A stretch of 60,743 nucleotides of DNA, counting the filler, from Hydrolagus affinis (Eukaryota), in the NCBI GenBank assembly GCA_012026655.1. It is 4 parts of 4 records of this genome, joined end to end, with 100 filler letters (N's around TTAATTAATTAA, not from the genome) between each part and the next. Parts side by side here need not be neighbours in the genome. Positions count along the whole stretch, not along the records: positions 12,268 to 29,814 come from JAAILG010015657.1; 3 more parts are not named here. One strand, written 5' to 3'. The notes below the pieces were generated by a model. It was not told where the DNA came from and made no database searches. It saw only the letters and a list, made by a program, of their open reading frames with translations. Shown here in pieces: positions 3,010-29,814 of this stretch. How positions within the stretch are numbered: position 1 is the stretch's first letter; each line of letters begins with the position of its first letter. A program made the translations under genes and the position numbers.

Positions 3010-3490
3010 CCCATCTCCCCCATCCTCGCCCGAATCCAATGACTCCTCATCATCCAGAGGATCAAATCAAGATGCAGTTCCTCACATTTAAAGCCTTTCA
3101 GTACCTCGCCTCACCCTATATCCATGACCTTCTGTATCCTTAACAACTTGCGCATCTCCACCGCTCATCATGCTGTGGACTGCTCTACATCCCCCGACCC
3201 ATCTGCCCAACCAATGACACGCGAGCTTTTAGCCACTCTGCCCCACACCTCTGGAAATACATATCGCAGTCCCTCCGCTTCGACCCTTCTCTGGCCTCCT
3301 GCAGGCCTCGACTGAAGACTCTCCTCCTCGATGGAACCATCACCAACTCCTAATCCCGCCCTTCCACTATTTTGCTCCCACCCACCCGTCCTCATCTCGG
3401 GTGTGAAGCAATAACTGCCCAGCGAATGCGAAGGTCCGCCTGACGTGAAGGGCGCTGTACAAATGCAATTTTGTTGCTGCCGTTGTTCGT
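3010..3490 (+). mobile_element. LINE2 3' fragment
   Basis: Contains CTGAAGACTCTCCTCCTCGA (KTLL-type motif) and ends in the GTGAAGGGCGCTGTACAAATGCAA(TTG)n tail. Confidence 0.7.
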
Positions 3491-4724
3491 CATACCGCTC
3501 CTTTAGTGCGGGATAGTTGGCTGTTTCATTTTGGAAGAAGGGTGAAACAACTTTAAGAGCTGCAGGTGATGATTTGCAGGGGTGTGCGCATTCTTGCAAA
3601 ATACTACTGCAATTCTTGCTTTTTACACTGTTGACTATTGGTCCAAAGATAGAAAAATTGGAAAGAAACATGGTACCAACCGGCGGTCACTTAATGCATG
3701 TTACCAAGAGTAATTTGGATGATGCAAGTATGCCCAACGTTTATTACTGATACTTATCAAACCACTGTTCTTCTCTCCGAAATCTTTCTCCTACAAATAG
3801 GTCAATTCTCTTTGCAGTATATTCTATCAAGCGCTCTGAGTCGTCGGCAAGATGTGAAAAGCGATACATCAAAAATGCAAGGATTATTATTATTATATTA
3901 TCATATCCTTGCCTCTCTTTCCAGTATACACAGACGCTACGTGAGCTGTTGGGTGTTCCCAGCGATCTCAGTATCTTTTCCCGTTTAAATTATGTTTCAC
4001 TGACAAAGCATTAATCTCAACACAATGCGTCTTTGAAGTTTGTACAATTAACATCCATTGGGACCAGCGGCTCGAAATTATTTCGCCAAAAGCAAAGCAA
4101 TTGAGAAAATGATACATCTCAAAAAAGCTATGTATGTTGACTGTTTCTATCTGCAGATTCGCAGTTAATTAAATTTACAGTATATTAACTGAAACATGAT
4201 GAGAAGTCGAGCAACAACAACAACGTTAAACTTGTGCAGCGCCTTTCACGTCAGGAGAAAATCCCAAGGCTCTCAACAGTTGCTGCTTTAGACACGAGCT
4301 GACGACGGGGTGGGAAGGGGGTAGCGGAGGACGTGTTACCGATGGGTCCATCGAAGAGGAGAGTCTTGGGGCAAGACTCGAAGGAGAGACGATGTAATGC
4401 CCTCATACCAAAATCAAAGATTTTTATTGCTGTTGTTTCCTCTACTCTTTCCCTGTGTGTACCATTCTATCGCTTTTTCGCTTGTGGTTTGAAATTTAGT
4501 CACGTGTTTCCTGTGAGAGACAGAGCAGCGAAGTTACAAACAGTCAACTGGGTCATCTGTCAGGAATTACATCTGTTCTCTCATTAAACCCATTAGCTCC
4601 TCTTTGTAGGTTTATGTACGGCGGTGTATGTGTGTCACTCATCTCGCTTCTCATGAACACCGACAGCAACTGATAGAGTGCTTCTCTCCAGGTGGATGGA
4701 AGCACTGAGGAAATGATCACAGTC

Positions 4725-4763: not shown

Positions 4764-5071
4764 TGGTTCGAGTGCGCAGTAATACACAGCGCTGTCCGAC
4801 AGCTCCAATGGAGAGATAGTTAAACTGGTGAATTGTATCGACTTCTGGAGCTCAACAGTGAAGCGCTTTTCAGCAAATTCTGCTTTATATGTACGACCAC
4901 TAGACAATTTTTTCAGCACATACTGGGGCTGTTTTCCTTGCTGTTCACGGTACCAGTGTAAAAAGTAGCTGATCTGAGATGTATCATAATGACATTCCAT
5001 GGTCACACGTCCTCCATGTTTCGCAGAAAGTGAAGTCGCCTTCTGTGTAACGGAATCTCCATGGGTCAGGC
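4764..5071 (-). CDS. TRAV/TRDV: TCR alpha/delta V segment V1, V exon
   Basis: Acceptor tttcag at 5072; open frame (G)LTHGDSVTQ..VTMECHYDT..YFLHWYREQQGKQPQYVL..RFTVEL..TSLTISPLELSDSAVYYCALE with Cys, Trp and YYC; followed by a 23-RSS. Confidence 0.93.
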
Positions 5072-5692
5072 CTGAAAGACAAGAAAGTGGAGGTCACTAG
5101 TACACTACAACCGTCTGACCTCAACATTGTTTACAACAATTTCAGGCCATAGGAGCTTCTCCCCCCCACACGCATCACCCATCACAATCATAACTCCAGA
5201 CACGCATTGCTTCTCTGTTGTTTTGATTGTTCTATCAACAACAAAAAACACTTCTCCCCAGTTTCGTTCAAACCCATCCCGTATTGTTTCTCTCCTCGAA
5301 GTCTTTAACACATATTCAACACATCAGTTAAAACACTATTTTTGCCTTTTCCTTTGTCTGCCTTGTCCCCTTTGACTTTCATGTCCTGCCTCTCCTCCTT
5401 TAACGTCCTTAAGAAACCCCTCCCTCCAAAAAAGCCCCAGTTCTGACGAAGGGTTGTAGACCCCCAACGTTGACACTTTTTCCTTTCTCCATGGATGCTG
5501 CCTGACCTGCTGAGTTTCCCCAGCAACTTTTGTTTCTGTTCCACTAGTATACTGATTATTGCAGTACTTACACAGGCGAGAGGACAGTTTTACCGTGGGA
5601 AAGGGCGAAACCAAAGGAAAGTTTTTATTCGATTGTGAACCGCTTTATCGGGGACTATTAACCCTTCTCAAGGATAGATAGATATTATGGAG

Positions 5693-12267: not shown

Positions 12268-13432
12268 GTATTCGTTTGAAACCCGAGGATGATTGAAAGA
12301 ATACAAAAGCAGGATATAACAGATAGTACAACACGCAGCGTCCTTAAAGTTATCTGCAATCTTTTGTGGAACATGCCTTGAACAGTGTCTTCTTGGTGAC
12401 TCCTGACAAAAATTGCCATTTTACTACAAGAGAACGACAATTTGTTGCTGGAGAAGTTTTGAAATGGCTGCTGGGAAAATCCCCAGCACTTTATATGTTA
12501 AAGTTTAACAGTTAAACAACGCCCTGCTGTGCGCTGGCGGTGGGGACTTTAACTCGGTGTTGCACAACTCTCCACAGTCTGCGCAAATTGCATTGTTGTG
12601 ATGTACAGCATACAATATCACGCTGCAGTGAAGCAGATACATTGGAAAGATTGAGGAGCCTCAGTTATGGAAACCCAATCTTGTGAACTGGCTGCCTCGC
12701 CAGCCTGAGAGAAGCCGTCGCTTCCTCGACTGCTGCCTAGTGGCAGTGTTTAGGTACGGAATTAACAGTGTAACACCATTGGAATACATTATCCTCGCAT
12801 TTTGATTTAATGCCTGATCAAGATGTCTCAAGCTTTTCACACTCGCGTTGTTACAAAGTCACCTAAGATTAAGATGCCGTTTTTTCCTTCGAACTGTGCT
12901 TTTGGTCATCAACACAGTTCTGCAAAAAGGCAACACAACATTTGTTCCACTTGGATTTCAGGAGCTTCAGATGTACAACAAAACAACAACAACAAAATGA
13001 CACTTGTAGAGCTCCTTTCACATCAGGGGGATGTCCCAAGGCGCTGACTTTGTATGAGACTTTGTATAGGATTGTGTACAGTATAAGTAAATCCAGATCA
13101 ATGCGTTCAGATAAATAAATGCAACAGGGTTCCGGGTTACAAGTAAAGGAGCAAAGGAGCACAATTTCACTTGAGACTAGATAGAAGTTTTTATTTAACG
13201 CAGATTATAATCGATGACTGAATTGGGTTACCAGGTAGGGTGATGGGTGAGGTAAGAATACTTGGCTCATTTAAAAAAAATTAAGTGCTGGGAGGGTGGG
13301 AAGATAGTTGTATTGGAGGGTTGAAATTAGCCGAAGGGTCCTCTTCTTCATCCAAACCTCTCTTGTGATTTAAGATTATGACTTATTGTAATTTAAGATG
13401 AAGTTATAAAAGTACGTTTATCATCTCCACAG

Positions 13433-13867
13433 CTCAGCCAAATGTCAGCTTGTCTCCACAACACATCGTCATCACCAATGGCTCGGCGGGCTTTCTGAGA
13501 TGTAAAGCAACTGGATATGTTCCTCAGGATACCGTAATCAAATGGATCAAGGTATCAGGTGACGGGGAGACAGAGATTAATTCCGCAGATTTCGGGACTG
13601 CGTTTATAGATGCCAGCAGTGTTTCCAGCCAGTTGAGGATCAGACCAACCATGGACGATGATGGCAATAAGTACAGGTGTGTCGTGACAGACACCCCATC
13701 CAATACTGTTATTGCACAAGAGGCAAAGCTGACTGTGGAGGAACCCACTGTACCATGGCCAATTATTGGAGGTGTCATTGGTGGAGTATCGTTGATAGTG
13801 TTGATTATATTAGTACTTTGTTGCTGCTGCCGCCGGAAACAAACTGAAGAATTTAAGAAAAAAATAG
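13433..13867 (+). CDS. B7-H6/NCR3LG1-like gene A: fused C1 + transmembrane exon
   Basis: ccacag|CT..ATA G|gtaag, 435 nt, phase 1-1. AQPNVSLSPQ..FLRCKATGY..VIKW..SSQLRI...DDDGNKYRCVV, then TM WPIIGGVIGGVSLIVLIILVL and CCCCRRK. Clearly homologous to the C1 exon at 28719 (AQPNVILLPQ..CSATGFYP..DDTGSKYRCVV). Confidence 0.85.
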
Positions 13868-15179
13868 GTAAGATTTGGTTATTCGATTATAAATGGTGTG
13901 GTAATATCTCTTGCCTTAAACAATCAGTAGATGAAATGTCCATATGAAGGCATAAGGGGGCCGAAAACGTTTTGGTTTCCAATTGGGTTCCTTCCAATGG
14001 AAACTGAGCAAGGATGAACTCCTTCCACTAACCAAACGGTGTCTTATAGGATCTGCTGACAGGTAGGCGTCCTGTGAATCAGAGTGACTTTATGCAGATG
14101 TATTATCTGTGAGAAACACTGAAACAGATTAAAGATCCTATGTATGGGTATTGTCTGTGTTACCAATGGATGATGTTATGCAGATAAGAAATAGTTGAGG
14201 CCAAAGGATGGGATGTGATGTGAAATGCGCTATACAAATGTAATTTTGTTGTAGTTGTTACAGCGATTGCCTCAGTGAACACCAGCGAGGACTAAACAGA
14301 AATGGGATGAAAAGCTGTTGGGAGAAATTTAGTGTAGATATTTGACAGGGACTATTAGAGTTGGGAACCTCAGTGATATACCCCAGAGTCTGTTGATAAA
14401 TATGAGGTGCAGTCAACTTTCTCATTACTATTTACTGTACTACTATGAGTGATTGCGTGGACCTCCTTAACTTGTTTCCCAGCACAAACCTGTGCTGCAA
14501 GTCACCTAACATCAGACAATAGGGACCTGATATTCCTTCTCCTGTTTCACACATGTGACAAGTGAAAGAAATTGACCCAACATGGACAACATATATATGA
14601 GGGGATCAATGCTGTATTAGGCTTTCACTGAACAAATTCTGCACTATAATGCCATATAATAATAATCATCCTTGCATTTGATGTAACACCTTATCACGTC
14701 TTTGAGTCGTCTCAAAGCGCTTCCCAGAATATACTGTAAAGTGAATTGACTGTATAGTGTGACACTGGCAAAACTCGGCAGCAAATTGCGCAACAAATTA
14801 TTATTCTTTTGAAGGGATTATTACCTCTGGAAAAGTGACCCACCAATCGACTAATAACTGTGTTCCTACTTATTGATGGGTGACCAATGGGTGTGGGGTA
14901 AAGGATCTTGTCACACGTGTGCAGCTGGAAAATGGGGTTGAAGTTGCGATATTTCTTAATGGAATTTCCTAGTACGAAATCAATGATGGCCAAATGGGAT
15001 TTCCTTCCAAGACCCTTGATGTCTGTCACACCAAACCAGAGGAATGCTCCAATATGGAGTTATCACAGGTCAATTGGAATTCTAATGGAACCCCTTAAGG
15101 TACACCACAAATTAGAAACTAATATCGCACGTGAGAGACGTAAAATGAAATGTGCGATTTTGTTCTAATTCCCTTATAG

Positions 15180-15608
15180 GTTCTCCTCAGATCAATCTAT
15201 TGACTAAACAAGACCAGTTTAAGGATGGTGTGGCGTCTCGTATAAAATGGGAAGTTACTGGGTTCACTCCCCGGAACATATCCATTGCTTTATTATTGAG
15301 AAGAAAAGGAGAAGAATTTCAGAAATTATATGATTGGAATTTGATAAATGATGAAAACCCAGAGAATGGCGAGAAAGGTTTTCTCTTAAACTCGTCATGT
15401 GCACAGGATTGGAATAAGAAAGAAGACTCCATTACTGCAGAAATCTCCAATTGCATTCAGTTGGAGGATGGCACGTTCAGCGTGAAGTGCACGATAACAG
15501 TCCGTCCTGATGCACCCAGGGATGACGGAGCTGAAGTCTCACTGGAAGTTCACCATGATACCCTTAAGACACCGCTCACTTCATCATTGAAGTTAGTCAT
15601 TGAAAGAG
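15180..15608 (+). CDS. Gene A post-TM C1-like exon 1 (no canonical Cys/Trp)
   Basis: ttatag|GT..AGA G|gtaag, 429 nt, open, phase 1-1. C1 hallmarks VTGFTPRNISI, EDGTFSV, DDG.EV.LEVHH.TL..PL....KLVI. Confidence 0.85.
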
Positions 15609-17038
15609 GTAAGGATTGTGTTCTGCATCCCTCTCTCACCAAACAAAAAACCACATGTGGAAACATAGAATCATAGAAATTTCACAAAAGGGACAAATAC
15701 TGGTTATCTAATTCCACAGAATATTTGACCCAGATTGTCCATGGTGTAGGTTTGGGATCCTCAGAGTGTTCTTGAGATCTTTGAGATAAATTCTACAGAT
15801 TAACTTGCTATTCGGAGCACTGGCTCTCAGGTAGTTTTGATGGTACAGTATTGACATGTCCTAATGCCAAATCCCAAATGGGCTGTATTGGATTGACAAT
15901 CAGTATTATCTGTGAAAACCATTTGCCCTTCAGTTACCCAAATACACTTTCTGAGGTCCCATTTGGTTGAAGTGCTGCAGTGGACTTCATAATTTGCATT
16001 TATTGCGGCTTGGTATATTGCCATCTGTGGTGTAGATATACAACAAGGACTAATAGAGTTGGGAACCTCAGTTATATACTCTACACCAGGGTCTGTTGAT
16101 GAACATGAGGTGCAGTCAACTTTCTGATTACTATTTATTACTGTGAGTGATTGTGTGGAACTCCTTAACCTGTTTCCCAGCTCAAACCTGTGCTGCAGTC
16201 ACCTACCATCAGACAATAGGGACCTGGTATTCCTTCTCCTGTTTCACACATGTGACAAGTGTCTGAATGAAATTGATCCAAGATGGATTTTATTGTCCAT
16301 AAACACAGAATTGTATATGAGGGGATGACTGCTGTATTAGTCTTTTACTAAACAAATTCTGCCCCCTAATGCAGCTATATAATAATAATCATACTTGCAT
16401 TTGATGTAACACATTATCACTCCTGTGAAGTGCTTTGAAATGTCTAGAAGATGTGAAAAGCGCAATATCAAATGCAAGGGTTATTATTATTATCTCAAAG
16501 TGCCCAACAGAATATACTGTTAAGTGGATTGACTCAATAGTGTGACACTGGTGAAATGTGGCAGCCAACACAACAACAAAATTGCACTTATATAGCGCCT
16601 TTCATGTCGGGAGGACATCCCAAAGCGCTGAAATAGTGCACCAAATTATTTTTTTTGTTTGTTTTTTATTACCCCTGGAAAAGTGATCTGCTGATCGATT
16701 GACATCTGGGTTCCTACTTGCTGCTGGGGGAATAGTGAGTGTGGAGTAAGGGAACGTGCCCAATGTGTGCAGCTGGAACACTGGGTAGAATTTGTGATAT
16801 TTCTCAATGGAATTTCCTGGTAAGATATCAATGATGGCCAAATGGGGTTTCCTTCCACGAGCCTTGATGTCTGTCACACCAAATCAGAAGAATACTCCAA
16901 TACGGGCTTATTCTGGGGTAGAATTATCACAGGTCATTTGGAATTCTAATAGAATCCCTTAAGGTACGCCACAAGTTAGAACCCAATATTGCACTTGAGA
17001 GTCTTGAAATGTCTGATTTTATTCGAATTCCTTTGTAG

Positions 17039-17470
17039 TTTCTCCTCAGATCAATATATTGACCAAACCCGACCACGTTAAGGATGGTGTGGCGTCTCAC
17101 ATAGCTTGGGAAGTTACTGGGTTCACCCCCCGGAAAATAGCCATAGCTTTGTTTGTGAGGAGAAAAGGAGAAGAATCACAGAAATTATATGATTGGAATT
17201 TGATAAATAATGAAGACCCACTAAAGAATGGCGAGAAAGATCTTCTCTTAAACTCGTCATGTGTACAGGATGGGAATAAGAAAGAAGACTCCATTACTGC
17301 TGAAATCTCCAACTGGATTCAGTTGGAGGATGGGACATTCAGCGTGAAGTGCATGATAACAGTTTGTCCTGATGCATCCAGGGATGACGGAGCTGAGGTC
17401 TCACTGGAAGTTCACCATGAGACCCTTAAGATGCCGCTCACTTCATCATTTAAGTTAATCATTAAAAGAG
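17039..17470 (+). CDS. Gene A post-TM C1-like exon 2
   Basis: tgtag|TT..AGA G|gtaaag, 432 nt, open; close paralogue of the 15180 exon. Confidence 0.85.
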
Positions 17471-18039
17471 GTAAAGATTGTGTTCTGCATCCCTCTCCCA
17501 CCAAACAAAACCCACATGTGGAAACATAGAATCATAGAAATTACACCAAAGAGACAAACACTGGTTATCTAATTCCACAGAATATTTGACCCAGATTTTC
17601 CAGAGTGTAGGTTTGGGATCCTCAGAGTGTTCTTTGAGATAAATCCTACAGATTAACTTGCTATTCAGAGCACTGTCTCTCAGGTAGTTTTGATGGTACA
17701 GTATTGACATGTCCTGATGCCAAATCCCAAATGTGTGTGGGGTAAAGGATCTTGCCACACGTGTGCAGCTGGAAAACGGGGTTGAAGTTGTGATATATCT
17801 CAATGGAATTTCCTAGTACAAAATTAGTGATGGCCAAATGGGGTTTCCTTTCACGACCCTTGATGTCTGTCACACCAAACCAGAGGAATGCTCCAATATG
17901 GAGTTATTCCAGGGTAGAGTTATCACAGGTCAATTGGAATTCTAATCAAACCCCTTAAGGTATGCTACAAATTAGAACCCAATATCTCGCGTCAGAGACT
18001 TAAAATGAAATGTCTGATATTATTCTAATTCCTTTTTAG

Positions 18040-18447
18040 TTTCTCCTCGGATCAATTTATTGACCAAATCCAACCAAGTTAAGCATGGTGTGGCGTCTCA
18101 TATAGCCTGGGAAGTTACTGGGTTCACCCCCCGGAACATAGCCATTGCTTTGTCTGTGAAGAGAAAGCAAAAAGAATCACAGAAATTATATAATTGGAAT
18201 TTGAAAAATAATGAAGACCTACTCTTAAACTCGTCTTGTGTACAAGATGGGAATAAGAAAGAAGACTCCATTACTGCTGAAATCCCCAACCGCGTTCAGT
18301 TGGAGGATGGGATGTTCAGCGTGAAGTGCACGATAACAGTCTATCCTGATGCATCTGAGGATGACGGAGCTGAAGTCACACTAGAAGTTTACCAAGAGAC
18401 CATTAAGAAGAGGATGAATTCAGTGGTGAAGTTAGTCGTTGAAGGAG
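18040..18447 (+). CDS. Gene A post-TM C1-like exon 3
   Basis: ttttag|TT..GGA G|gtaag, 408 nt, open; in-frame deletion relative to exons 1 and 2. Confidence 0.85.
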
Positions 18448-18893
18448 GTAAGGATTGCTCTCTGCATCCGTCTCCCATGCAGTAACATAAAACCATAGAA
18501 ATTACACCACAGGGACACATACTATGTATCTAATTCCAGAGAATATTTAGCACAGATTGTCCAGAGCGTAGGTTTGGGATCTTCAGAGTGTTCGTTGGGT
18601 TAACTCCTACAAATTAACTTGCTATTCGGAGCACTGTCTCTCAGGCAGTTGTGATGGTACAGTATTGCCATGTCCTGATGCCAAAGCCCAAATGGGCTCT
18701 ATTGGATTGACAATCAATATTATCTGAGAAGACGATTTGCCAGTAGTTACCCAAATGCACATTCTGGAGTCCCATTTGGTTGAAGTACTGCAATGGAGTA
18801 TGTAATTTGCATCTGTCTCAGCTTGGTATATTACCATCAAGTCTCTTTTGGGTTCATTATTACCAGGCTTACCATGTGATGTCTGTTTTATAG

Positions 18894-19325
18894 TTCCTCC
18901 TGCAGTGACTGAAATTGACACGTGGCCCGAGGTTAAACATAGTGAAGTGGCCAGTCTGAGTTGGTCAGTCATCGGGTTTGCTCCAAAGCCCATTTCCATT
19001 ATTTTCTTTCTGAAGAGGAAAGCGGATCAGAAAACAAAGAGGCTGTTTCACTGGCAGATCCCAGAGAAGGGAGGAATAGATGATGAACCAAAGATGGGGA
19101 GCACTGCTCTCAAAGATGTAAGGGAGCAATGTGAGGAAGATGATATCATCACTGCTGTGACACCCCACTGTGTGAGGAAGAACGATGGAACGTTCTGTGT
19201 AAACTGCAGCATTTGGATGACTGCTGATATGTGCAGGGATGATGGAGCTGAATTAATTGTCGAAGTCTTTCACAAGGCTCTTGAGATGCCTCTCAAGACA
19301 TGTATGACATTACACGTTACAGGAG
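18894..19325 (+). CDS. Gene A post-TM C1-like exon 4
   Basis: ttatag|TT..GGA G|gtaag, 432 nt. VPPAVTEI..ASLSWSVIGFAPKPISI..NDGTFCVNC..DDGAELIVEVFHKAL. Confidence 0.85.
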
Positions 19326-19382
19326 GTAAGAGCTGCATTCATGTATGTGTGTTGACGTGTATTCTGAAGAGTGTAGTTTGCA

Positions 19383-19710
19383 CAGTAAAACCTCAATAAT
19401 CCAGCATTCCGAAAGCCGGCAATTCCCTAAAACCGGCAAGATTTCAAAATATGTGCAGTATTAGATTCATTTCCGATGTCGGCAAATCTCCTGAAGTTTA
19501 GAGCAGCAGCTTGGAGTCACGGTGTCGCCACTCTGTCAACCGGCGCTGTGGATGGAGCTCGGGGCATTGTTTGCCTTCAGTGCTATGTTTACAGCACACG
19601 TGGTATCTGTGGCGACACATTCCTAGCCATTACTAGGTAGGTTTCTAAATACCGACAAACTCCAAAATCTGGGAAGTGCGTGGGCCCAACTCTGCTGGTT
19701 TAGCGACCAT
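19383..19710. mobile_element. Possible Tc1/pogo (Tigger-like) non-autonomous DNA element
   Basis: Begins CAGTAAAACCTCAATAATCCAGCATTCCG..CCGGC, resembling pogo/Tigger termini; the right end is decayed. Confidence 0.35.
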
Positions 19711-20108
19711 AATGAGTGACCATATCATTATTTTCTATAAAAAACAATTTGAAGGGATTATTATCCTTGGATAAGCGATCGCCAATCGACTAATTGACTA
19801 GTTGGGTTCCTGCTTACCGCTACAGAGCCGTGTGAAGTGAGGAAATTTGCAAAATGTTTTGCCCTGCCCAGGAATCGAAATAGGGTCCCCTTGAGACAAG
19901 ATGAGTTTGAGATTACTTTGACGTTTGAGGTTAGCAATTGCCTGGTTGAGCCACAAATAAGGAGACACCAATAATGTTTTCCACATAAAGACCGATAAAG
20001 AACATGCAGAATGAGATGATTTCTTTTCAAATGTGCTTGTATCACAAAGTGACATGTTACAGAATGACAGCACAGTGTCCATTTAACACGCTTATTTCTG
20101 TTTTCTAG

Positions 20109-20537
20109 TTCCTCCTACAATCACTGAAATCAAGGAACCCCCTGAGATCACTCCCGGGGAGTTGGCCAGCCTGAGCTGGGCAATTGTTGGCTTCAGTCCA
20201 CAGGCCATCAACATTGTTACCTTTGTGAAGAGGAAAGGGGAGAAGGTGAAAAAGAAAGTCTGTCATTGGCGGATCCCAAAGAAAGACAAGGAATCTCAGG
20301 AAGCTAAGACAGCCAGTGTTCCCCTCGACAATGTCGCAGAAGGTTGTGAGGAAGATGGCTCCTTCACTGCCGTGACGCCCCACTATGTGCAGAAGAATAA
20401 TGGGACGTTCAGTGTAAACTGCAGTGTTTGGTTGTGTGCTGACGCATCTCAGGATGATGGAGCTGAATTAATGGTTGAAGTTCACCATGAGGCCCTCAAA
20501 GAGCCTCTCATTAAGTCTAAAACATTACATGTTACAG
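20109..20537 (+). CDS. Gene A post-TM C1-like exon 5
   Basis: ttctag|TT..ACA G|gtaag, 429 nt. VPPTITEI..ASLSWAIVGFSPQAINI..NNGTFSVNC..DDGAELMVEVHHEALKEPL. Confidence 0.85.
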
Positions 20538-21508
20538 GTAAGTTCTGCCTCTGAACGGTGTCCTCGCCATCTCTCATGCATCGCTCCAGTGTTTACCTTA
20601 TGATTCTAACAGGATTGATGGATATGCTGAGTGTGAAGATGCCCCTGCATTGTCATTGCAGGCAGAATGTCAGTGATGGCTTCCCATTATTATTTCTGCG
20701 TCTTCATATCTTTCGCTATTCTATTATGCAGAAACTTACTGATAAATATACTGATGGACAGACGGACTGACTGACATGCACGCACGCACGCACGCACCTA
20801 CGCACGCACGCACTCATACACCTCTCTCGGTTGCTTACACATCCACTCATTCTCTATCAATATCTGACACTCACTATCTCTATCTCTCACTCACTATCTC
20901 AATAAAATAACTTGCATTTATATAGCAGCCTTCATGCAAGGTAGTGTACAGAGTGTTTAATCCATGTCTCGTACACTCATATACAATCACACATATGCAT
21001 ACCCTCTATTGTTCACTCATTCCCTCTCTCCAACTCACACACTCTTTCACCCGTTTGTTCCATTCCTCACATACACACATACTCACACACCGACATACAT
21101 CCTGACATACATGGACATCAGGATTTAACATTCAGAAACCCGACAACGTATTCAGTGTATTTGTTAAATAATAATAGTAATAATGCTTGCATTTGATATA
21201 GCGTCTTATCACTTTGTTGAGACATTGCAAAGCACATCACAGAATATATGAAACGTTGATTGTCCAGCGCCTTAGGACGTCCTCTTTACGTGAAAGATGC
21301 TGTACAAGTGTAATTTTGATTGTTGATATTGTAAAGTGAATTGACTATTTTGTGTGTGAAACACGGCAGCCCATTGTGCGCAGCAGTATTCCACAAACAG
21401 CGATAAAATAATTTCTCTCATAATGTGAAACAGAAGTTGGTGAGATCTGTTTGTGGATTGCACTATGTTGTTTAGGTGATTAATATATTTAAATTTTCTC
21501 TGGTTTAG

Positions 21509-21522
21509 ATGGTGGAAATTAA
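21509..21522 (+). CDS. Candidate terminal exon of gene A (DGGN-stop)
   Basis: ttttctctggtttag|AT GGT GGA AAT TAA fits phase 1; AATAAA near 21950. Other terminal exons cannot be excluded. Confidence 0.25.
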
Positions 21523-22099
21523 GTTTGAGTCTTCGAGCCGCCAAGCAGATGATGTTTGAGGAGAACGTATTTGCGAGTCTCTGCTCTGCACGACACATCC
21601 ACAGAGTATTCGCAACAGCCACAGTCATCATCAAGGCTTTCAATTCTGACAACCACAACATTGATCAGCTTTTGTCAGTTGGTGAGCAGTGATTAGCTCT
21701 GTGTCATCTTTCTAGAATTATAGAGAATATGCTGTGACGATTTTGACACATGAAAGCTCCTTTTCTACAATAATCAACAATAGATGTGTTTTTTCAGATG
21801 TTATTATCACAAGTATATTTTGGGGTGCTTGATAACAACAACAAAATTACAATCGTATGCTGCCTTTCAATGTTGCTTGGCTCATGGGAATTGGATTATT
21901 CTACTTGTTAAGTTAATTGCTGTGAATGCCAGGATATCTAATGAGTCTAATAAAAATAACAGCTAATATACTGAATCTTGTTGAAACTAACGGTATAAAA
22001 TCTAACAGATTTTGAGACATGAAAAACATTGATTTGTGATTGATTGAGATGTTCAGGAGGTAGAAAGATAGCTACTTGGGAAGTAAATTGTTGAGAGTG

Positions 22100-22520
22100 G
22101 AGTTTGTGGAGTCTTGTAACTCAGTGGTTAGAGCACTTGTCTCTCAGGCAAGAAACCAGGGTTTGATTACCAGCAGGGCAAAATCTTGAGCAAGTTTCCT
22201 TACTCCACACGCCTGATAATACTGTAGTACGTTAAGAATAAAAACAATAATAAATTGGTCACTTGAATCCACGACTGTTTGTGGGTCACTGCTATACGCA
22301 ATTGGCTGCCACGTTTTACCCATAAATTTACAGTCAATTAACAACAACAAAACGACATTTATAGAGCGCCTTTCACAACGGGATGATGTCTCACTGAACA
22401 TTCAGGGTCGGGACCCGAGCATGGGGGAGGAGCAGTATGGGAAGATTGTAAATTAACTTTACAGTATATTCTGTGAACACTTCGAGACGTCTAGAAAATG
22501 TGAAAAGTGCTATATCAAAT
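22100..22520 (+). mobile_element. tRNA-derived SINE (with L2-type tail insertion)
   Basis: GTAACTCAGTGGTTAGAGCAC..GGGTTTGATT..GAGCAAGTTTCCTTACTCCACACGC..AATCCACGACTGTTTGTGGG..GTGAAAAGTGCTATATCAAA tail. Confidence 0.8.
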
Positions 22521-23477
22521 AGAAGGATTATTATTATTATCTATTGGAACAGACTTGATGGACTGACCTACTACCTAATGTTCCTATGTGCCAAAGCAAA
22601 GACTGACATTGTCTAATGGTCAAGTGCAGTGTTAGTCTTTGTTGATTTCACTTCTTTGTTATCCACTAAAGAGCTTCATATTGGTTAGGCAATGTACAAT
22701 TGCTAAATATGCATCATGTGTATCAACTCTTCCAATTATTTACTGCACATTGCTATTTATGTAAGGAAATATTTTGTTTGTATACAAAGCATATAAGTAT
22801 ATCCTTTCTATATAAACAAAGTTTATATATGGTACTGTGAATAAACAAGTACAGTATTACAAATAAATAGTTGCGTATTCAAAACTTGTATATTGCTTCC
22901 AAACAGAACAAAGATATGGATAACCATACATATTGAAAATTGGGAATAATAATAATCCTTGCATTTGACATAACCCCTGATCATATCTTCGAGACATCTC
23001 AAAGTACTTCACAGAATATACTGTAAAGTGAATTAACTGTGTATTTGGGTTCCTCCACAGAACACGAGTAAGATGTACTGTCCAATGTACAATGGTTAAT
23101 TGTAGTGAACCTAATGGCTTATGCTGCTGTAGCTAACATTAATAAACATTAAAAATTGAAATTTGTGCAAGACTTTTTCAATATAGATATTTCAGATGGC
23201 TGCCAATATTTCCCTCCTATCTTTATACTTCTCCACCAATTATTTACCATTCCTCCTATGTAGTTATCACAATAATAACAATTTACCTTTACATTACACC
23301 TTGGGAGAATGTCTCAAGGCACTTCACACAAACAATTGGAAGCTCAAATGGGAGAAGTTGAGGAGGAGGTGAGGGTGCAGTAGTTGAGGAGGATGGGGAA
23401 TCAGATCGGGACTATGAAGCAGGCTGGTGTTGCCAGAGCCCGCTGAATGGAGGGGACGGACAGGCTAATAGGGAGAC

Positions 23478-23860
23478 AGCAACAACAACAACAACTTAGA
23501 TTTGCATAGCGCCTTCCACGCCGGATGGCTTCTCAGAGCGCTTCTGAGATCGGAAAGATAGGCGGGGGCAAGACCATGAATGGCCTTGAAAATGAGGATG
23601 AGGATATTGAATTCGATCCACTTGGGGATGGGGAACCAGTGGAGACGGGGGAGGGTGGGAGTGATGTGGTCACGGAGCCTAGTGCAGGAGAGTACACGAA
23701 CTGCAGAGTTCTGAATAATCTGCAGCTTGCGAATGGAGGAGTTGGGAAGGACGACGAGGAGAGAGTTCCCGTAGTCAAACCTTGATGTGATGAATGCATG
23801 GACGAGTGTTTCGGCAGCGTGAGGAATGGGGGGTGAGGAGATCTCAGCTTCCACCTCAAA
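23478..23860 (-). mobile_element. LINE2 3' fragment
   Basis: ORF 23465-23941: AETLVHAFITSRFDYGNSLL..LPNSSIRKLQIIQNSAVRVL..RDHITPTL.RLHWFPI..IEFNILILIFKAIHGLAPAYLSDL. Confidence 0.9.
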
Positions 23861-25803
23861 ATATTCCCTAACTGTTGTGTTCGGCCACTCTTTCCCTCCT
23901 GTCTTTATATTTATCCACCAGCCTTGCCTACTCCAAAGCAAAACTTTTTTACATGTGATGGGTCATCCTGGTGTCTCCTGATTCTTGGTGGTCCTTGCCC
24001 TGTTTTTCATTAGCCCTTTTCTTATCTTGACTAGCAGAGTGGCTCTTAAACATTCCTGTTTTCTCGAAGTATCTTATTGTAAAACACCTCCCCATTTTCC
24101 CAGGCATTCTGACCAGCTTTCTTTCTTACCTTGTGACTCCTTAGCCCGTGAGAAGACATCGAGTAGCTTGATTGATGTATTTAACTGAATATGTTTTTCT
24201 GCCTTTGTCCTTCACCTTATCATGTCTACAAGAGCTAATGCCAGCCAATCTACATTCCCTTCTTTTACAGACAGGGCTGATTTCTGCAAGTTCTTAATTA
24301 TTTTAAGATGCTAAATAGCACTGTGTGGTTCTGTTGTACACATCCTGCAAAGACTGTTACTTTTCTAAGTAACATAAAGAAAGTCATATAACGCTTATAC
24401 CAATAATATTAATGCCATATTGCCATTTTTTTTTAAATTATTGCAAGTGGAGCAGGGTGAAGGTGTGGGATTTGGGCTTGTGGAGCCTGGTGCATTGGAG
24501 GAAACAAACAGCAGAATTTTAGATTGCACTGTTTGCAGTGACTGCAATTTATCTTGTAATGGACTTATTCAAAAAATGAATGAGAATTATTCCTATGGAT
24601 AAATGAATCTACTTTAAGTGCCTTCACATGTGTGGCAACTATGGAGTTACATAGGTTAATGTAGCTAGAGATAATTATATATTGTTGCATATTTTCTCAA
24701 CACTTTATTGCTCAAATCCACTAGCATAGCTTGCACTATCTGCCAAGCTTTCCCACTGCTTGTCCAGCTGGGACAACCACACCCGTTAGCGCTTTGGATT
24801 GCTGGGTTAATGAGTGCAAAGAATCCCTGACTCCAGTGATTGGTCTGCCCTTCCAAATCCTGCCAATAAGCATTAGCAATGCACTGGAGTACTGTGGACT
24901 CTTGTAATTTGACATTGATCCATGTAATTTCACATTGGTCATGTAGTGTTCTAACATTTTGTTAGAAGACCATTGCTGAGGCAGTATTGAGGCAATAAAG
25001 AAACCACCTGTGCATACTGCAGTGTAATCAGGCAGAATGAGTTTGATGCTGACACTAGGCGATGCAACAAAAAATAGGTACTAAATGTTGTACTTTAATG
25101 ATCCAGCAAAAAACATTATTGTGTTGTGTAGATCGTATGGTATTGAGCTCAAACTTGCTTTTTGTTGTTGGGTTTCCATTCTGAGGGTACCATCTGCTTT
25201 TCGATCAACACTCTTGCAGAAAACGCCTTTCAACGGGGATGTTAAAAAAAAATTTTTTAAATTGATCATTAACTTTATGGCTGTGAGACAAGATTAGCTG
25301 CTGCCATGGCCAACTCAACACACAATCACTCCCCTTTGCAGAAGCCTCTGGTGCAATGGTAGCAAACTCAAATCCAAGGATTATTATATTACTATTGTTA
25401 TCATCTGGAAACAGAGCACCGTGAATTCACTGCAAGGTCCTGGAGCCAAGCCAGAGAAGGATCTTTGTTATTTATCAAAAACCTTTGGACTTCGATCTCA
25501 GCCAATTTCAGTTGTCGGTTTTAAATTGATTACCTGCACAGTAAAGTACACCTCATGTGTTTTGGTTTCAGTGTGATACCAAGCTGGAGCATTCACCCTG
25601 GCGTTTAACTGCAACTTTTCCATTTCCCAGTTTAGACAATTTGATTCAAAAGTAAATGTTAAAACTAGATTTTAGGGAAAAACATTTGGCTACGTGGCTC
25701 CTCGGCTGTGCTAATGTTTGAATTCCGTTCCGAATAAGGACTTGATTGTGAACTTATACTTACATTCGGTTAAAATCCTGGCTTTTCAAAAAGGGTGTGG
25801 AGC

Positions 25804-25827
25804 AGTGAAAGTGAAAGGGTGATTTCC
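25804..25827 (+). promoter_or_regulatory. ISRE (AGTGAAAGTGAAAG) abutting a kappaB-like site (GGGTGATTTCC)
   Basis: GAAANNGAAA match about 80 bp upstream of the gene B ATG, followed immediately by a near-consensus NF-kB site. Confidence 0.6.
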
Positions 25828-25896
25828 ATGTACAGGTAGTGGGATAATCAGAGCAAGTCATTTTATTAAGAAAATCCTGCATCTGTGGAGGGAAGG

Positions 25897-25948
25897 ATGG
25901 CGATTCTGGCTTTGTGCGTTGTCGCTGTCTCCTTTATCTCAACATCAG
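25897..25948 (+). CDS. NCR3LG1-like: B7-H6/NCR3LG1-like gene B, leader exon (MAILALCVVAVSFISTS-G)
   Basis: 52-nt ATG..G|gtaagt exon, hydrophobic signal peptide, phase 1. Confidence 0.88.
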
Positions 25949-27535
25949 GTAAGTAACTTTGAGCCCATCTCTTTCTCGTCCTCAAACCTGGGTTGGTTGT
26001 AAAATGCGAGCAGAGGAACCACTCAGCTTCTCTCCAGCCTCTGTTGCATTTTCCATTCTCTACCCATTGTTTCTTTCAAAATAGAAATCTTTTATTTTCA
26101 TCAATCAATTTTGCAAATGTCTAAAGTTACCATTGTAATTTTGGAAGTTGCTATAAATGTAAACGACATAACCACGAAAGAGTAAGCAGCCTTTAGAGCA
26201 AACTACCTATCGTTTGGCATTAATGGAGGGGCTAGATCTACTCTATTCGTGTAATATAATAGGAATCCTTGTATTTGACATTATATATAATCCTTGCATT
26301 TGATATGGTGTGCTATCATGTCTCCTAGACACCTCAAAGGGCTTCACAGAAAATACTGTAAAGAGAATTGCTGTGGATTAAGTGACCAAATTATTATTAT
26401 TTTTTTAAAAGGGATTATAATCCCCAAAAAAGTGATCTGCCAATTGACTAACAATCGGGTTTCTACATACAACTAAGGTAAACATTTCAGATTGTCCAAA
26501 ATTTGGCAGGATCTTGAATTTACTCTTAACTTTGAAGTTGGGTTTCTGTAATTCTTCAAGTAAACTTGCATAAAAATGAGTGTATGGTGGAGTCCTGTAG
26601 TGCAATGGTTAGAGCAATTGCCTCAAAATTTGCCAAATTCTCGAAGCTCTGAAACTACATACACAGAGTGATCCTCTACATGGATGGAATACTGTACAGT
26701 CAAACCTGATTTCTACAACCCCCCAGTGGGTATTAAATAAGGATTGCTGTGCAGAGTAGCTCCAGGCTGGTTGTTGACAGGGGTTGGTTGCTGAACGGAG
26801 GTAGTGGATTGAACAGGTTTGACTGTGTATCTCTCCTCAATACAACAAGAATAAATTACATTTGTAAAGACCACATCCCTTAATGATAATGTCTCAGAAT
26901 AATTTAGATCTTAATGTTTTGTACTCTAAATGCAATGAATACATTCAGCATTGACAGCTGCTTCCATTGGCTTTAGAAAGTACATGATAGATAGATGATG
27001 TGCAGGGTTAAAGAGATTGTCCTTTTTCATGATTAGATGAAGCATCTTCCTGAGTAGGTGCTAGTTCAAAGCAACATTTTATGAGGATGCACAGAATACA
27101 ATAGAGCAGTGTTCGCCAACCTGTGACCTCTCTCCGAGCCAGCACCAAGGAGTGCCTCGTAGAACACCCACCACAGTCCAGGCAACTCTGCACCAAATCA
27201 ATGCTTTGTTTTCAGTAGCTACTGAGTCCCGATACACATGGCACAGCCATAAATGAAAAAAAATTCAATAAAGTAAAACGGAATTGGTAGGCCGACCATA
27301 AATGATGGAGAGCAATGCTGTATAGAGGAGCTGGTAGGCTGAGGAACAATGAGTCAACCAACATCCTTAGTTCTCTCATCTTATCACATGGCATGTTCTA
27401 TCCCATCCAAGGGGTACTTTTGTTTCCTGTTCTTGCTTCCTGTGTACAGTATGTTGCATTTATCTGTATTGATAAGAATCTGATGGACATGGTCAGAATA
27501 TAACTTCATTTAATTCATTTTTTTTTCCAAATTAG

Positions 27536-27874
27536 CATTGGAAATGACGTTATTCAACAGTCCAATGAAAAGGCAAGTGAATGAGAACGTAGTCCTGGAA
27601 TGCAAGGTGTCTGGTTACCTGGGCGGACAGATCAACCTCAAAATGGTAGGAGTTACGTGGTCTTTTGGGCCTAGCAAGAAACTCGTGTATTCATATGCTG
27701 CAGGAAAAGCTTTTGTACATCGAAACAAGGCAAAGATTTCTGAAGAGAATTTAAGGACAGGAGATGCCTCATTGTATCTCTCTAACATACAAATTGAGGA
27801 AGAAGGAGATTACACATGTTCGGTGATCGTAACCCCAGACAAAGTAGAAAAGACATCCACACTCCAAGTGTCAG
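27536..27874 (+). CDS. NCR3LG1-like: Gene B V-set exon
   Basis: attag|CA..TCA G|gtaag, 339 nt. ALEM..NVVLECKVSG..VGVTW..ISEENLRTGDASLYLSNIQIEEEGDYTCSVIVTPDKVEKTSTLQVS; the GDASLYL and C.V.VTP..K motifs are typical of B7-H6-type V domains. Confidence 0.88.
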
Positions 27875-28289
27875 GTAAGGGTCAACAATGCTCCATATTA
27901 AACATATTATAATGGGGAGAAATCCCACTTGATTCTAGAATTACTCTATTCATGTATATTTTCAGCATCCAGAATTTGGCAAATGGTTGAATTGGGTGTT
28001 CACTCTGAAACTTTTTTTTCATGGTTTTGTGGAAACATACAGAAATTAAGGTACAGTATTTAAGAATTTGGGGGTGGAATGGCAGGTATGTAGGGCCTCC
28101 CTGGCATTGACATTGGCTCCAAGGTGATGTGTTGATGACGGAATGTTGGAATTGAGGCAATGGCGATCATGGTCGTCTGGTTCCTGAGTTTGAACCCACT
28201 TTCTCTATGAGTACTTTTTCACTCATGGATGAGAGTGCCAACTGAGCCAGGGTGATATGTAGGAAGATGTGAATTGGAATATAGCTTGT

Positions 28290-28670
28290 AATGTGTGGAG
28301 TCCTGTTGCGCATTGGTTAGAGCAATTGCCTCGCAGGCAGGAGGACCCTGGCTTGATTCATGGGCAAAGCCAAATGTTAGGCAAGATTGCTTACTTCACA
28401 TGCCTCTGTTCACCTAGCAGTAAATTGGTACCCAGTTGTTAGTCGATCAGTGGATCGCTTATCTGGGGGTAATAATCCCTTTTAAAAAAAATGTAGCCAC
28501 TCAATCCACGACTGTTTGTGGGACACTGCTGTGTTCAATTGGCAGCCATGTTTGACCCACAAAATATTGTCAATTTATTTTATAGTATATTCTGTGAAGT
28601 GCTTCAAGACATCTCAAAGATGGGATAAGGCGCTATATCTAATGCAAATATTATTACTACTGTTATTATT
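28290..28670 (+). mobile_element. tRNA-derived SINE in gene B intron
   Basis: GGAGTCCTGTTGCGCATTGGTTAGAGC head, CCACGACTGTTTGTGGGACACTGCTGTG body, AAGGCGCTATATCTAATGCAA tail. Confidence 0.8.
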
Positions 28671-28718
28671 ATGCCGCTGTGAAATGGCTTCCCAACTTTT
28701 CATTCCTCTTCTTTGCAG

Positions 28719-29036
28719 CCCAGCCAAATGTAATTCTGTTGCCACAGCCTTTTACAGTTCTTCTTGGTTCAACAACATTTGTGAAATGTAGTGCTACCGG
28801 ATTTTACCCTCAGGAGCTCGAAATCATCTGGTACAAGATATCGCACGAGAAAACGCAAAACATTTCAGCAAAAAGCTACAATAAAGGACTTAAGAACAAT
28901 AATAAAACGTTTAGCATTTCCAGCTTAATGCCCATTGTGCCAATTCTGGATGATACTGGGAGTAAGTACAGGTGTGTAGTGAAGCACCGGTCATTAGCTG
29001 AGGATCATGCCATGGAAGCGGAACTCCTTGTCCATG
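28719..29036 (+). CDS. NCR3LG1-like: Gene B C1-set exon
   Basis: ttgcag|CC..CAT G|gtagg, 318 nt. VKCSATGFYPQELEIIW..NNKTFSISSL..DDTGSKYRCVVKHRSL. Confidence 0.9.
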
Positions 29037-29641
29037 GTAGGTTTCATTTCCAAGAGGAATCCATTACTTTATTTTTGTGCTGAATTTTTCTTTTTTATGT
29101 TCTTTACATGGTTTCAATACTGGAATAAATGATTGTCTCCAAGTTTTTGAAAAGAAAGTTCAGTGAATGCTGGGAAATGTCAGATTGGTACTTTGCCTAT
29201 AAGAGAATCACAAGAGAGATTTGAGTAAAGAGTCCCATTGGCCCATTCGATCTTACACTTCTAGCATCAAGTTGATTCTTAAATGTGTCTTGTGCCTTTA
29301 CTTACATTACCCTTGGTGGGATACCAATCCAGCAGTGTGAAACACTTTGAGACATAATGATCTGAAAGGTGCTGTATAACATCAATCAATCAGCCAGCCA
29401 TAACATGAATTGGATAGTGTGTTTGTAATTTAAACCCTTAGAAATTTCTAAAGTTACTTGGGGATGGTTATCTGAGAGCTTGTATTGAATAACTTAAACA
29501 GTAAAGAGTTGATACCAAATGAAGTTAGTTTTGCCTCAATGTAAGCACCTGGCCCATTCAGATCTTATATAAGTACAGTACTGTAAAATGGTTTACTGAT
29601 TAGTTGCTTAAATTGATTCTCAATGTTCCAAGCAATTACAG

Positions 29642-29746
29642 AATGTAACAACCGTAATATTGGTGGATTCATTGGAGCAATCATTGCTCTGTTAGTGTGT
29701 GTCTCACTTCTCATCGGATTTGTTACCTGGGATAAACGGCGAAAAG
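29642..29746 (+). CDS. NCR3LG1-like: Gene B transmembrane exon (ECNNRNIGGFIGAIIALLVCVSLLIGFVTWDKRRK-G)
   Basis: ttacag|AA..AAA G|gtaag, 105 nt, phase 1-1; hydrophobic stretch followed by KRRK. Tail exons are presumably lost in the gap at 29815. Confidence 0.85.
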
Positions 29747-29814
29747 GTAAGCTACTTTTATCTACCTGAAAATACAAATTACTATTATTAAAATCTTCTA
29801 TTATTTCCATATTT

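Follow-up and report, generated by a model that had tools for sequence, protein, structure and literature searches.

The window analyzed here is a stretch of 60,743 nucleotides joined from four parts of the Hydrolagus affinis genome assembly, one of which (JAAILG010015657.1) carries the gene described below, with all features on the plus strand. An exon at 13433..13867, recognized by its sequence and frame, by Pfam matches (Ig_3, 1.8e-8; C1-set, 7e-5; and TM-like matches), and by a counterpart in Callorhinchus milii, lies between an acceptor (..ccacag/) and a strong phase-1 donor (AG/GTAAGA at 13867). It encodes an extracellular C1-type Ig domain with both canonical Cys residues (approximately 13433-13740), a short stalk, a hydrophobic transmembrane (TM) helix of 20 residues (P-IIGGVIGGVSLIVLIILVL; 13759-13818), four Cys residues (CCCC; 13819-13830), and RRK (13831-13839), which is followed by QTEEFKKKI at the exon end. 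Downstream lie five phase 1-1 exons: R1 (15180..15608; 429 nt), which encodes a 143-residue Ig-like domain without the Cys pair; R2 (17039..17470; 432 nt) and R3 (18040..18447; 408 nt), which are the second and third copies of the R1 type; and R4 (18894..19325; 432 nt) and R5 (20109..20537; 429 nt), which belong to an older repeat type. All five have polypyrimidine-AG acceptors and GAG/GTAAG- or CAG/GTAAG-type donors (CAG/GTAAGT in R5), are in phase 1 at both ends, and have lengths divisible by three; together, they contain approximately 715 codons and no stop (chance probability for five such open frames, ~1e-15). The frame ends in a terminal coding mini-exon of 14 nt (21509..21522), in which a phase-1 acceptor (tttag/AT GGT GGA AAT TAA) leads to DGGN and the stop codon, and a 3' UTR with its first AATAAA at 21949 comes next.

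Splice sites and frame show these exons as one transcription unit, as read from the sequence, in which the C1+TM exon is followed by five symmetric phase 1-1 exons and the end is formed by a four-codon terminal exon. The piece is best explained as the 3' two-thirds of a holocephalan gene in a B7-H6 (NCR3LG1)-like family, and no leader or V exon of this gene was found inside it. On re-reading, the chain, phases, and coordinates that the first-pass annotation had assigned to the TM exon and the five repeat exons all hold, and the long tail that it had proposed after the TM helix comes to approximately 730 residues by the exon chain.

The R repeats (~141 amino acids each) carry a roughly 40-residue acidic insert between strands C and D. 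They all align over their full lengths and have the motifs GFxP..I.I, DGTFS, DDGAE, and EV.H..L..P in common, although R3 lacks 8 residues of the acidic insert and reads EVYQ at the EV.H motif. As had been noted at first reading, none of the five retains the canonical B/F-strand Cys pair, while the C1 domain ahead of the TM helix has both residues. The B-strand Cys position is occupied by Trp, the F-strand position by L, V, or I, and the canonical C-strand Trp position by L, V, or F. In place of the canonical pair, the repeats conserve a Cys in the E strand. AlphaFold (AF2) models, which cover two repeats, confidently predict the Ig beta-sandwich expected for R5 (seven strands; pLDDT 93.3) and R1 (pLDDT 88.8; the insert contributes extra short strands), and the other three repeats align with them at full length.

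The assignment of the repeats to the C1 set, which was also part of the first-pass annotation, stands as to ancestry, with qualifications. The repeat family profile matches Ig alpha/mu constant domains, the SIRP-alpha C1 domain, and MHC II beta2 (whole-sequence E values, 4e-10 to 1e-6), with the matches to known C1 domains falling on the GF.P..I and DGAE..V.H..L..P blocks, and the top 50 Foldseek matches of R5 are MHC II alpha2/beta2 and beta2-microglobulin. However, the structures nearest to R1 are antibody V domains, nanobodies, RAGE V-C1, and B7-H6, and no repeat exceeded the Pfam C1-set gathering threshold (best, R2; E = 0.1; 13.4 bits versus a cutoff of 21), with no C1-set match in Pfam for R1, R3, R4, or R5. 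The I-set profile matched ectodomain exons only and none of R1 to R5, and no post-TM exon had a Pfam match to PRY/SPRY (B30.2). On the basis of the models and the profile matches, each repeat exon is shown as a predicted Ig beta-sandwich of ~141 residues derived from C1-set domains; judged by sequence, the repeats are strongly derived (i.e., they have an insert, lack the canonical Cys pair and Trp, and have no Pfam C1-set match).

The orthologous C. milii locus is collinear with the H. affinis gene and has the same exon plan. Its C1 and TM segments are also fused in one exon, an intron of only ~257 bp separates the TM exon from the first repeat exon, and the terminal exon is arranged identically, with the same DGGN C terminus (L001 15735-15748); the DNA flanking this mini-exon is 79% identical between the two species. 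The ectodomain part of the C. milii orthologue (P0002) is SP-V-C1-TM. The V domain is absent from a close C. milii paralogue (LOC103174897), of which isoform X2 is one R exon short of the 895-residue form; the paralogue model P0184 is SP-C1-TM without V. At the protein level, R4 is 81% identical to the second repeat domain of P0002 (dN/dS, 0.54) and R5 is 83% identical to the last one. The dN/dS values against C. milii range from 0.52 (R2 versus a C. milii R exon) to 0.64, and synonymous change exceeds nonsynonymous change when R2, R4, and R5 are pooled (p = 5e-4). R1, R2, and R3 are recently duplicated R1-type copies (amino acid identity of R2 to R1, 82%; dN/dS for R1 versus R2 and R3, 0.55 to 0.65), of which R2 and R3 are part of a tandem duplication unit. 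A dN/dS of approximately 0.55 indicates moderate constraint only. The number of repeat domains per gene is 3 to 5 in chimaeras, where either one or three belong to the R1 type, and 7 in the horn shark.

A search for the repeat domain in other vertebrates, of the kind that the first-pass annotation had proposed, yielded 143 cluster representatives with a match to the repeat profile. They come from cartilaginous fishes (sharks, rays, and chimaeras), bichirs, coelacanth, lungfish, and two groups of amphibians (a caecilian and frogs), and annotators named them "uncharacterized" or NCR3LG1. The repeat domain usually stands directly after the TM helix, commonly starting ~10 to 30 residues from a single TM near residue 250 to 300, and the order of ectodomain, TM, and Ig-like domain(s) was found in more than ten species. 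This order is shown to recur among the predicted gene models of all these lineages. The same architecture is probably present in an elephant-shark cDNA, namely UniProt V9K7L7 (SP-V-C1-TM-8-domain order), which departs from the genome model at 15 of 1079 residues, the kind of difference that an independent sequence should show. A frog relative (P0019) combines a SIRP-like V-C1-C1 ectodomain and a TM with a subsequent long C1-type run (~1,800 residues). A literature search found no published description of an architecture in which an Ig-domain array follows the TM, and the earlier suggestion of an unreported architecture holds to that extent; however, the architecture is not unique to the H. affinis locus and already exists in many public gene models.

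The sequence predicts an N-out/C-in topology, in agreement with the orientation first proposed from the basic residues behind the helix. The 12 residues after the TM contain 3.3 K+R versus 1.6 in the 12 residues before it (higher after the TM in 55 of 69 proteins), charged residues make up 26% of the sequence after the TM versus 22% before it (p = 6e-10), and the observed/expected ratio of N-glycosylation sequons falls from 1.65 ahead of the TM to 1.11, the chance level, behind it. In the H. affinis gene, CCCC directly follows the helix. The canonical disulphide, with its F-strand Cys, is missing from the R-type domain family-wide, and in long relatives at least three of the other post-TM domains have an incomplete canonical disulphide, while both ectodomain Cys pairs are kept (15/15). 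Four lines of sequence evidence (i.e., positive-inside charge, juxtamembrane Cys, chance-level sequons, and frequent loss of disulphide Cys) fit a cytosolic tail. A signal peptide would direct the ectodomain to the outside; since the leader and V exons lie outside the piece, the leader is inferred from the C. milii relatives. The strongly hydrophobic helix followed by CCCC-RRK would then act as a stop-transfer anchor and so would leave a putative disulphide-free Ig-like array of ~730 residues in the cytosol. The proposal that the Cys pairs were lost through relocation to a reducing compartment is only partly borne out. The repeats and most post-TM domains do lack a complete pair, but the F-strand Cys loss is old, and post-TM domains 2 and 3 of the long relatives retain the C-W-C triad in 15 of 15 species (~450 million years), a pattern expected of disulphide-bonded extracellular domains.

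Those fully conserved triads speak for a different reading, in which the Ig-like array is extracellular, the main product being a secreted SP-(V)-C1-(Ig-like)n protein with the TM left out and the TM form being minor or nonfunctional. C1-set domains are otherwise extracellular or luminal, and predicted isoforms of two elasmobranchs, Heterodontus (X3) and Hemitrygon (X6), differ from their TM-containing partners by exactly the TM cassette (P0146 versus P0001 and P0157 versus P0013). Without this cassette, the same domains would enter the secretory pathway, which makes secretion a serious alternative at the level of the family. In the H. affinis gene, however, C1 and TM share one uninterrupted exon, as in C. 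milii, so the TM exon cannot be skipped. We found no conserved internal donor able to remove the TM from this gene; the sole internal phase-1 GT ahead of the helix core (GGAG/GTGTCA; exon end, 13771) is a weak site that C. milii lacks. In the various species, the TM is retained by nearly all other isoforms that were inspected, and both the chance-level sequons and the incomplete Cys pairs of most post-TM domains speak against secretion. We regard this reading as unlikely, although worth keeping in view.

The symmetry of the R exons admits another possibility, since any subset of them can be skipped in frame: the main product could be a short membrane protein, with the TM exon joined to the DGGN exon or to some R exons, and the R exons would be variable cassettes of little functional weight. 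The loss of one R exon in LOC103174897 isoform X2 and the moderate level of constraint are in line with it. We nevertheless consider it improbable, given that all five R exons have open frames and strong splice sites, that R4 and R5 are so similar to the C. milii protein and the pooled synonymous excess is significant, and that this domain type is kept directly after the TM across gnathostomes. Phase compatibility by itself has little diagnostic value, since phase 1-1 is shared by nearly every Ig-domain and TM exon in immunoglobulin superfamily (IgSF) genes, and the R exons could in principle form a gene apart, equipped with a leader, or be decaying pseudo-exons that the phase-1 rule alone places in one chain. 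The first-pass annotation had named a separate gene with its own leader among the findings that would overturn it; between the TM exon and R1 (13868-15179), there is no leader candidate (i.e., an ATG followed by a hydrophobic stretch and a phase-1 donor). The short C. milii intron, the conserved terminal exon that ends the frame after R5, the stop-free codons, and the recurrence of the same order in other species and in the independently derived V9K7L7 make this explanation very improbable.

We therefore favor, as the probable reading, a B7-H6-like gene with a cytosolic C1-derived array that arose by exon duplication 3' of the TM and may serve as a scaffold tail. Most likely, a C1 exon was copied to a place downstream of the TM exon, where it would stay in frame because all these exons are phase 1-1, and later tandem exon duplication would have altered the number of modules. 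C1 domains characteristically pair via their sheets, and we speculate on this basis that the tail acts as a modular scaffold in the cytosol, dimerizing or clustering the molecule or docking cytosolic partners and perhaps linking the interior state of the cell to the display of an NK-receptor-type ligand. Such a scaffold or sensor function, modeled on the folded cytosolic B30.2 of butyrophilins, is speculative; no known cytosolic motif was found in the tail, which ends in DGGN. More tentatively, and with slightly less than even confidence, we propose that type I IgSF proteins of this kind (SIRP-like in frogs, otherwise B7-H6-like) form an ancient class that spans the gnathostomes and was lost in teleosts and amniotes, whose cytosolic C1-derived arrays would be the first cytosolic C1-set-type domains and would couple cell state to NK-ligand display as a scaffold or sensor.

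The C1 set is a hallmark of the extracellular adaptive-immune machinery (Ig, TCR, MHC, beta2-microglobulin, tapasin, SIRP, and B7-H6). If the favored reading is true, C1-derived domains behind a membrane anchor would break this secretory-pathway rule and would supply a natural case of Ig constant-type folds that need no disulphides for stability, a point of interest for the design of intrabodies. The same reading would point to an intracellular function of B7-H6-type NK ligands in early vertebrates, in parallel to the butyrophilin B30.2. Should a TM-skipped secreted form be functional instead, the family would represent a new class of soluble multi-C1 proteins, still of interest to comparative immunologists.

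The likeness to B7-H6 claimed at first is carried by the ectodomain of the C. milii orthologue, for which the top solved relatives are human B7-H6 chains (6yjp, 4zso, and 3pv6; 3.6e-24), ahead of UrIg2, CD276, and tapasin-related protein; the H. affinis C1 domain alone is not diagnostic. B7-H6 (NCR3LG1), a ligand of NKp30, is a type I membrane protein whose ectodomain combines a V and a C1-type domain; of these elements, the H. affinis piece supplies the C1 domain and the TM, and the V domain is seen in C. milii P0002 but not in P0184. The cytoplasmic tail of human B7-H6 is non-Ig and has roughly 170 residues, whereas the H. affinis tail consists of five Ig-like domains. The family genes stand in tandem clusters, comparable to the Xenopus B7H6 genes, which Flajnik et al. 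are said to have described in such clusters in 2012. Butyrophilins (BTN/BTNL; V-C-TM-B30.2) have a B7-related ectodomain, a single TM, and a folded cytosolic beta-sandwich, with inside-out signaling possible, and set a precedent for joining a B7-like ectodomain to a folded domain inside the cell; their module is PRY/SPRY, whereas that predicted for H. affinis is Ig C1-derived and present in five copies. The Ig sandwiches of titin, obscurin, and MyBP-C are I-set and disulphide independent and act as modular scaffolds in the reducing cytosol. Those proteins are soluble and sarcomeric, whereas the H. affinis repeats are C1-derived, have no I-set match, and are tied to a membrane anchor. The SIRP family (V-C1-C1-TM), whose SIRP-alpha C1 domain is among the solved sequences closest to the repeat profile, differs in the tail, which in the known SIRPs is short, carries ITIMs or binds adaptors, and contains no Ig domains. 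The UrIg and UrIg2 proteins of cartilaginous fishes are nonrearranging IgSF members whose long C1-type arrays, in some cases with acidic stretches, were produced by duplication of exons in tandem, and the VJ domain and all nine C1 domains of UrIg2 are N-terminal to its TM and cytoplasmic region (PMC12227049). Thus, UrIg2, which is among the better solved relatives of the C. milii orthologue ectodomain, has its array before the TM, whereas the H. affinis array stands after it.

The piece of the window that carries the gene (positions 12268 to 29814) is vertebrate DNA with ~40% G+C content and interspersed repeats. The exon at 13433 to 13867 (+ strand; acceptor ending in ccacag; phase 1 start) encodes, in order, a C1-type Ig domain that retains the two canonical Cys residues (in FLRCKATGY and YRCVV), a short stalk, a hydrophobic transmembrane (TM) helix of 20 residues (13759 to 13818), CCCC (13819 to 13830), RRK (13831 to 13839), and then QTEEFKKKI; it closes with an AG/GTAAGA donor, one base into the following codon. 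Its first 90 residues matched the Pfam families Ig_3, I-set, and C1-set, and the helix matched TM-type families. Five repeat exons follow on the + strand in open, phase 1 frames, namely, R1 (15180 to 15608), R2 (17039 to 17470), R3 (18040 to 18447), R4 (18894 to 19325), and R5 (20109 to 20537), all with strong acceptors, donors of the GAG/GTAAG or CAG/GTAAG type, and phase 1 throughout. The gene ends with a mini-exon (21509 to 21522, +; tttag/AT GGT GGA AAT TAA) encoding D-G-G-N and a stop. Every exon coordinate in the first-pass annotation, which had joined the TM exon in frame to five phase 1-1 exons, is borne out by splice sites, phase 1 frames, and the lack of a stop over ~715 codons. Since ~715 consecutive stop-free codons have a chance probability near 1e-15, that observation is confirmed.

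The remainder of the piece holds several other features. C/A-rich low-complexity DNA (ACGC and CTCA repeats; strongly negative GC skew) occupies 20770 to 21100 in the last intron, just past R5. Copies of a short interspersed element occur in both orientations (14645 to 14910, 16423 to 16763, 21166 to 21329, 22107 to 22540, 22945 to 23047, 26274 to 26484, and 28296 to 28672), and the same element is plentiful in the Callorhinchus milii locus (70 to 84% identity); its motifs (..GCGC.TTATA..TGCAAG..ATTATTATT..) are known from Deu-type SINEs. A 158-codon open frame on the - strand (23465 to 23941), in a locally GC-richer patch, had no Pfam hit and carries ..HITP.L..LHW.PI...I.F.., a motif known from the C-terminal part of fish LINE reverse transcriptases. 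Pfam searches of four open reading frames of the piece other than the repeat exons gave no match. Downstream, a second B7-H6-like gene lies in tandem (+), with a V-set exon (27538 to 27879; Pfam, 1.1e-9) and a C1-set exon (about 28700 to 29050; 2.2e-11). Unlike that of the studied gene, its C1 exon ends in ..LLVH/G with no TM fused to it; the rest lies beyond the piece.

In the profile search, the closest family protein was C. milii XP_042197527.1 (P0002), which consists of a signal peptide, a V domain, a C1 domain, a TM helix, CCC-RK, three repeat domains, and DGGN. Its locus is collinear with the Hydrolagus locus (71 to 89% DNA identity) and likewise has C1 and TM in one fused exon. A C. milii paralogue (LOC103174897; P0184 and P0185) has a leader, C1, TM, five repeats (three of the R1 type and two of older types, the same number as in the Hydrolagus gene), and DGGN, with the signal peptide directly before C1 and no V domain; its isoform X2 has four repeat domains versus five. 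The only V exon in the piece belongs to the downstream gene, and the stretch of the piece before the C1 exon gave no leader or signal-peptide exon either. Since no V exon was seen in 12268 to 13432, and P0184 lacks one, the Hydrolagus gene itself may be without a V domain. UniProt V9K7L7, whose accession series is probably derived from elephant-shark transcripts, has signal peptide, V, C1, and TM followed by eight Ig domains, and differs from the genome-derived model at 15 of 1,079 residues. A word-indexed protein search with the tail of the orthologue retrieved four C. milii proteins only and none from Hydrolagus affinis. Additional repeat-domain-like exons flank the orthologue on both sides (positions 1094 to 1314, 3450 to 3634, 4886 to 5083, 23470 to 23829, and 25184 to 25673 of its locus), which points to a tandem cluster of genes with the post-TM repeat domain.

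R1, R2, and R3 are recent copies (70 to 82% protein identity; tandem units of ~1 to 1.9 kb), while R4 and R5 are older (53% identity to each other and about 31 to 38% to R1 to R3). All five have in common W..(V/I)GF.P..I.I, a basic RK/KRK, an acidic insert of ~40 residues, DG.F.V.C, DDGAE, and EV.H..L..P. The levels of dN/dS were 0.35 to 0.72 between repeats and 0.52 to 0.64 against the orthologous C. milii exons, and synonymous change exceeded non-synonymous change in the pooled repeat exons (p = 5e-4). The outer C1 domain is diverging no more slowly than the tail (dN/dS, 0.64). Alignment of this domain with C. milii also revealed a 5-residue deletion at 13600 to 13640, with loss of the DGTF motif and VVTD instead of VVTH.

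The repeat exons were searched (Pfam) and folded exon by exon, with R5 and R1 as the modelled repeats. AlphaFold2 with a 93-sequence alignment predicted a seven-strand sandwich for R5 (pLDDT, 93.3; pTM, 0.86), and R1 reached a pLDDT of 88.8, with lower confidence (block means, 59 to 61) only in the insert. Foldseek placed R5 near MHC class II alpha2/beta2 domains and beta2-microglobulin, and the family profile matches Ig alpha/mu constant domains, SIRP-alpha C1 domains, and MHC II beta2. Of the five C1-set folds originally proposed, the Ig sandwich (as predicted for R5 and R1) and the C1 affinity hold; full C1-set membership does not, since no repeat exon matched a significant Pfam family (the C1-set model remained below threshold). 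The structures closest to R1 are V domains, RAGE, and B7-H6 itself. R1 to R5 have lost the canonical Trp and Cys pair, with Trp at the B-strand position, an aliphatic residue in strand F, and a Cys in strand E instead. Across the 93 aligned sequences (R5 positions 23, 104, and 122), the strand-E Cys occurs in 66, the B-strand position is Cys in 51 and Trp in 27, and the F-strand Cys is absent from the domain type; the (B, E, F) pattern C-C-aliphatic was found 34 times versus 10 for the canonical C-S-C. Because the C1 profile and R5 structure match, yet the Pfam score is subthreshold and the Cys pair and Trp are lost, the repeats are, on profiles and predicted structures, C1-derived Ig-like domains and not canonical C1-set members.

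A family profile searched against 1.84 billion representatives matched 143 proteins (14 of them at <1e-30). Named members come from cartilaginous fishes (Heterodontus, Scyliorhinus, Stegostoma, Hemitrygon, Narcine, Amblyraja, Pristis, and Callorhinchus) and from Erpetoichthys, Polypterus, Latimeria, Protopterus, the caecilian Microcaecilia, and several frogs. They are annotated as "uncharacterized," apart from two members named NCR3LG1/NR3L1. Most have a single TM helix near residue 230 to 300, with the repeat domain type starting a few residues later. The horn-shark gene has seven near-identical domain copies, and "long" members carry six or seven extra C1-type domains.

On the basis of these sequences, the gene probably encodes a B7-H6-like type I membrane protein whose tail, of ~730 residues, is a cytosolic array of Ig modules that derive from C1 domains and lack disulphides. 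A cytosolic tail is favored by the strong hydrophobicity of the helix and by the CCCC-RRK that comes after it; next to a TM helix on the cytosolic side, such Cys clusters are typical sites of palmitoylation. Among 69 family members, K+R per 12 residues averages 3.3 after the TM versus 1.6 before it (higher after in 55 of 69). Charged residues are commoner after than before the TM, and N-X-S/T sequons are enriched in ectodomains (O/E, 1.65) and at chance past the TM (O/E, 1.11). The proposal that the Cys pair was lost past the TM and kept before it applies to the Hydrolagus gene but only partly to the long members. In these, the ectodomain V and C1 pairs are kept in 15/15, a pair is never present in the first post-TM domain, and one of the two Cys is missing from at least three later domains; however, post-TM domains 2 and 3 retain C-W-C in 15/15 species, which counts against a cytosolic tail and is compatible with a secreted, TM-less functional form. 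Such a form also draws on predicted isoforms that lack exactly the TM cassette, of 31 residues in Heterodontus (P0146 versus P0001) and 38 in Hemitrygon (P0157 versus P0013). These would be secreted SP-V-C1-(Ig-like)n proteins, a pattern that suggests regulated membrane-versus-secreted splicing in elasmobranchs. In the chimaera gene, this route is closed: C1 and TM share one exon, and the sole internal phase 1 donor before the helix core (GGAG/GTGTCA at 13771) is a weak one that C. milii lacks. We regard a secreted form as unlikely. That the main product is a short isoform lacking the repeats is slightly less probable still. That the repeat exons belong to a separate gene with its own leader, or are pseudo-exons, is very improbable and was rejected: no leader-like exon lies between the TM exon and R1, the corresponding C. 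milii intron spans only about 257 bp, and the terminal mini-exon is the same in both species.

The array most likely arose by a simple route, the duplication of a C1 exon to a site 3' of the TM exon; since every IgSF domain exon, like the TM exon, is phase 1-1, such a copy keeps the frame, and later tandem duplication alters the number of modules. Speculatively, and by analogy with butyrophilins and their B30.2 domain, the tail may be a modular scaffold in the cytosol that brings copies of the molecule together in pairs or clusters or that binds partners.

The first-pass annotation knew of no description of this architecture, and we likewise found none of Ig/C1 domains C-terminal to the TM in B7-H6-like genes in the full-text literature, although prior mention in Flajnik et al. 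2012 and Ohta and Flajnik 2015 is possible; gene models of the family are already public. Contingent on its membrane topology, the post-TM Ig array matters for comparative immunology. Among published multi-C1 genes of cartilaginous fishes, the nearest is UrIg2, whose TM is at its C terminus (PMC12227049), whereas that of the studied gene precedes the Ig-like array; an UrIg/UrIg2 identity was rejected because of this difference. Human B7-H6 is the best solved relative of the P0002 ectodomain (3.6e-24). A frog protein (P0019; Dendropsophus ebraccatus; 2,158 aa) has a SIRP-alpha-like V-C1-C1 ectodomain and a TM with RYRQKRR but, unlike SIRP, continues past the TM with about 1,800 residues of successive C1-type domains, and it closes in an acidic low-complexity stretch. 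Therefore, post-TM C1 arrays are not confined to B7-H6-like ectodomains.
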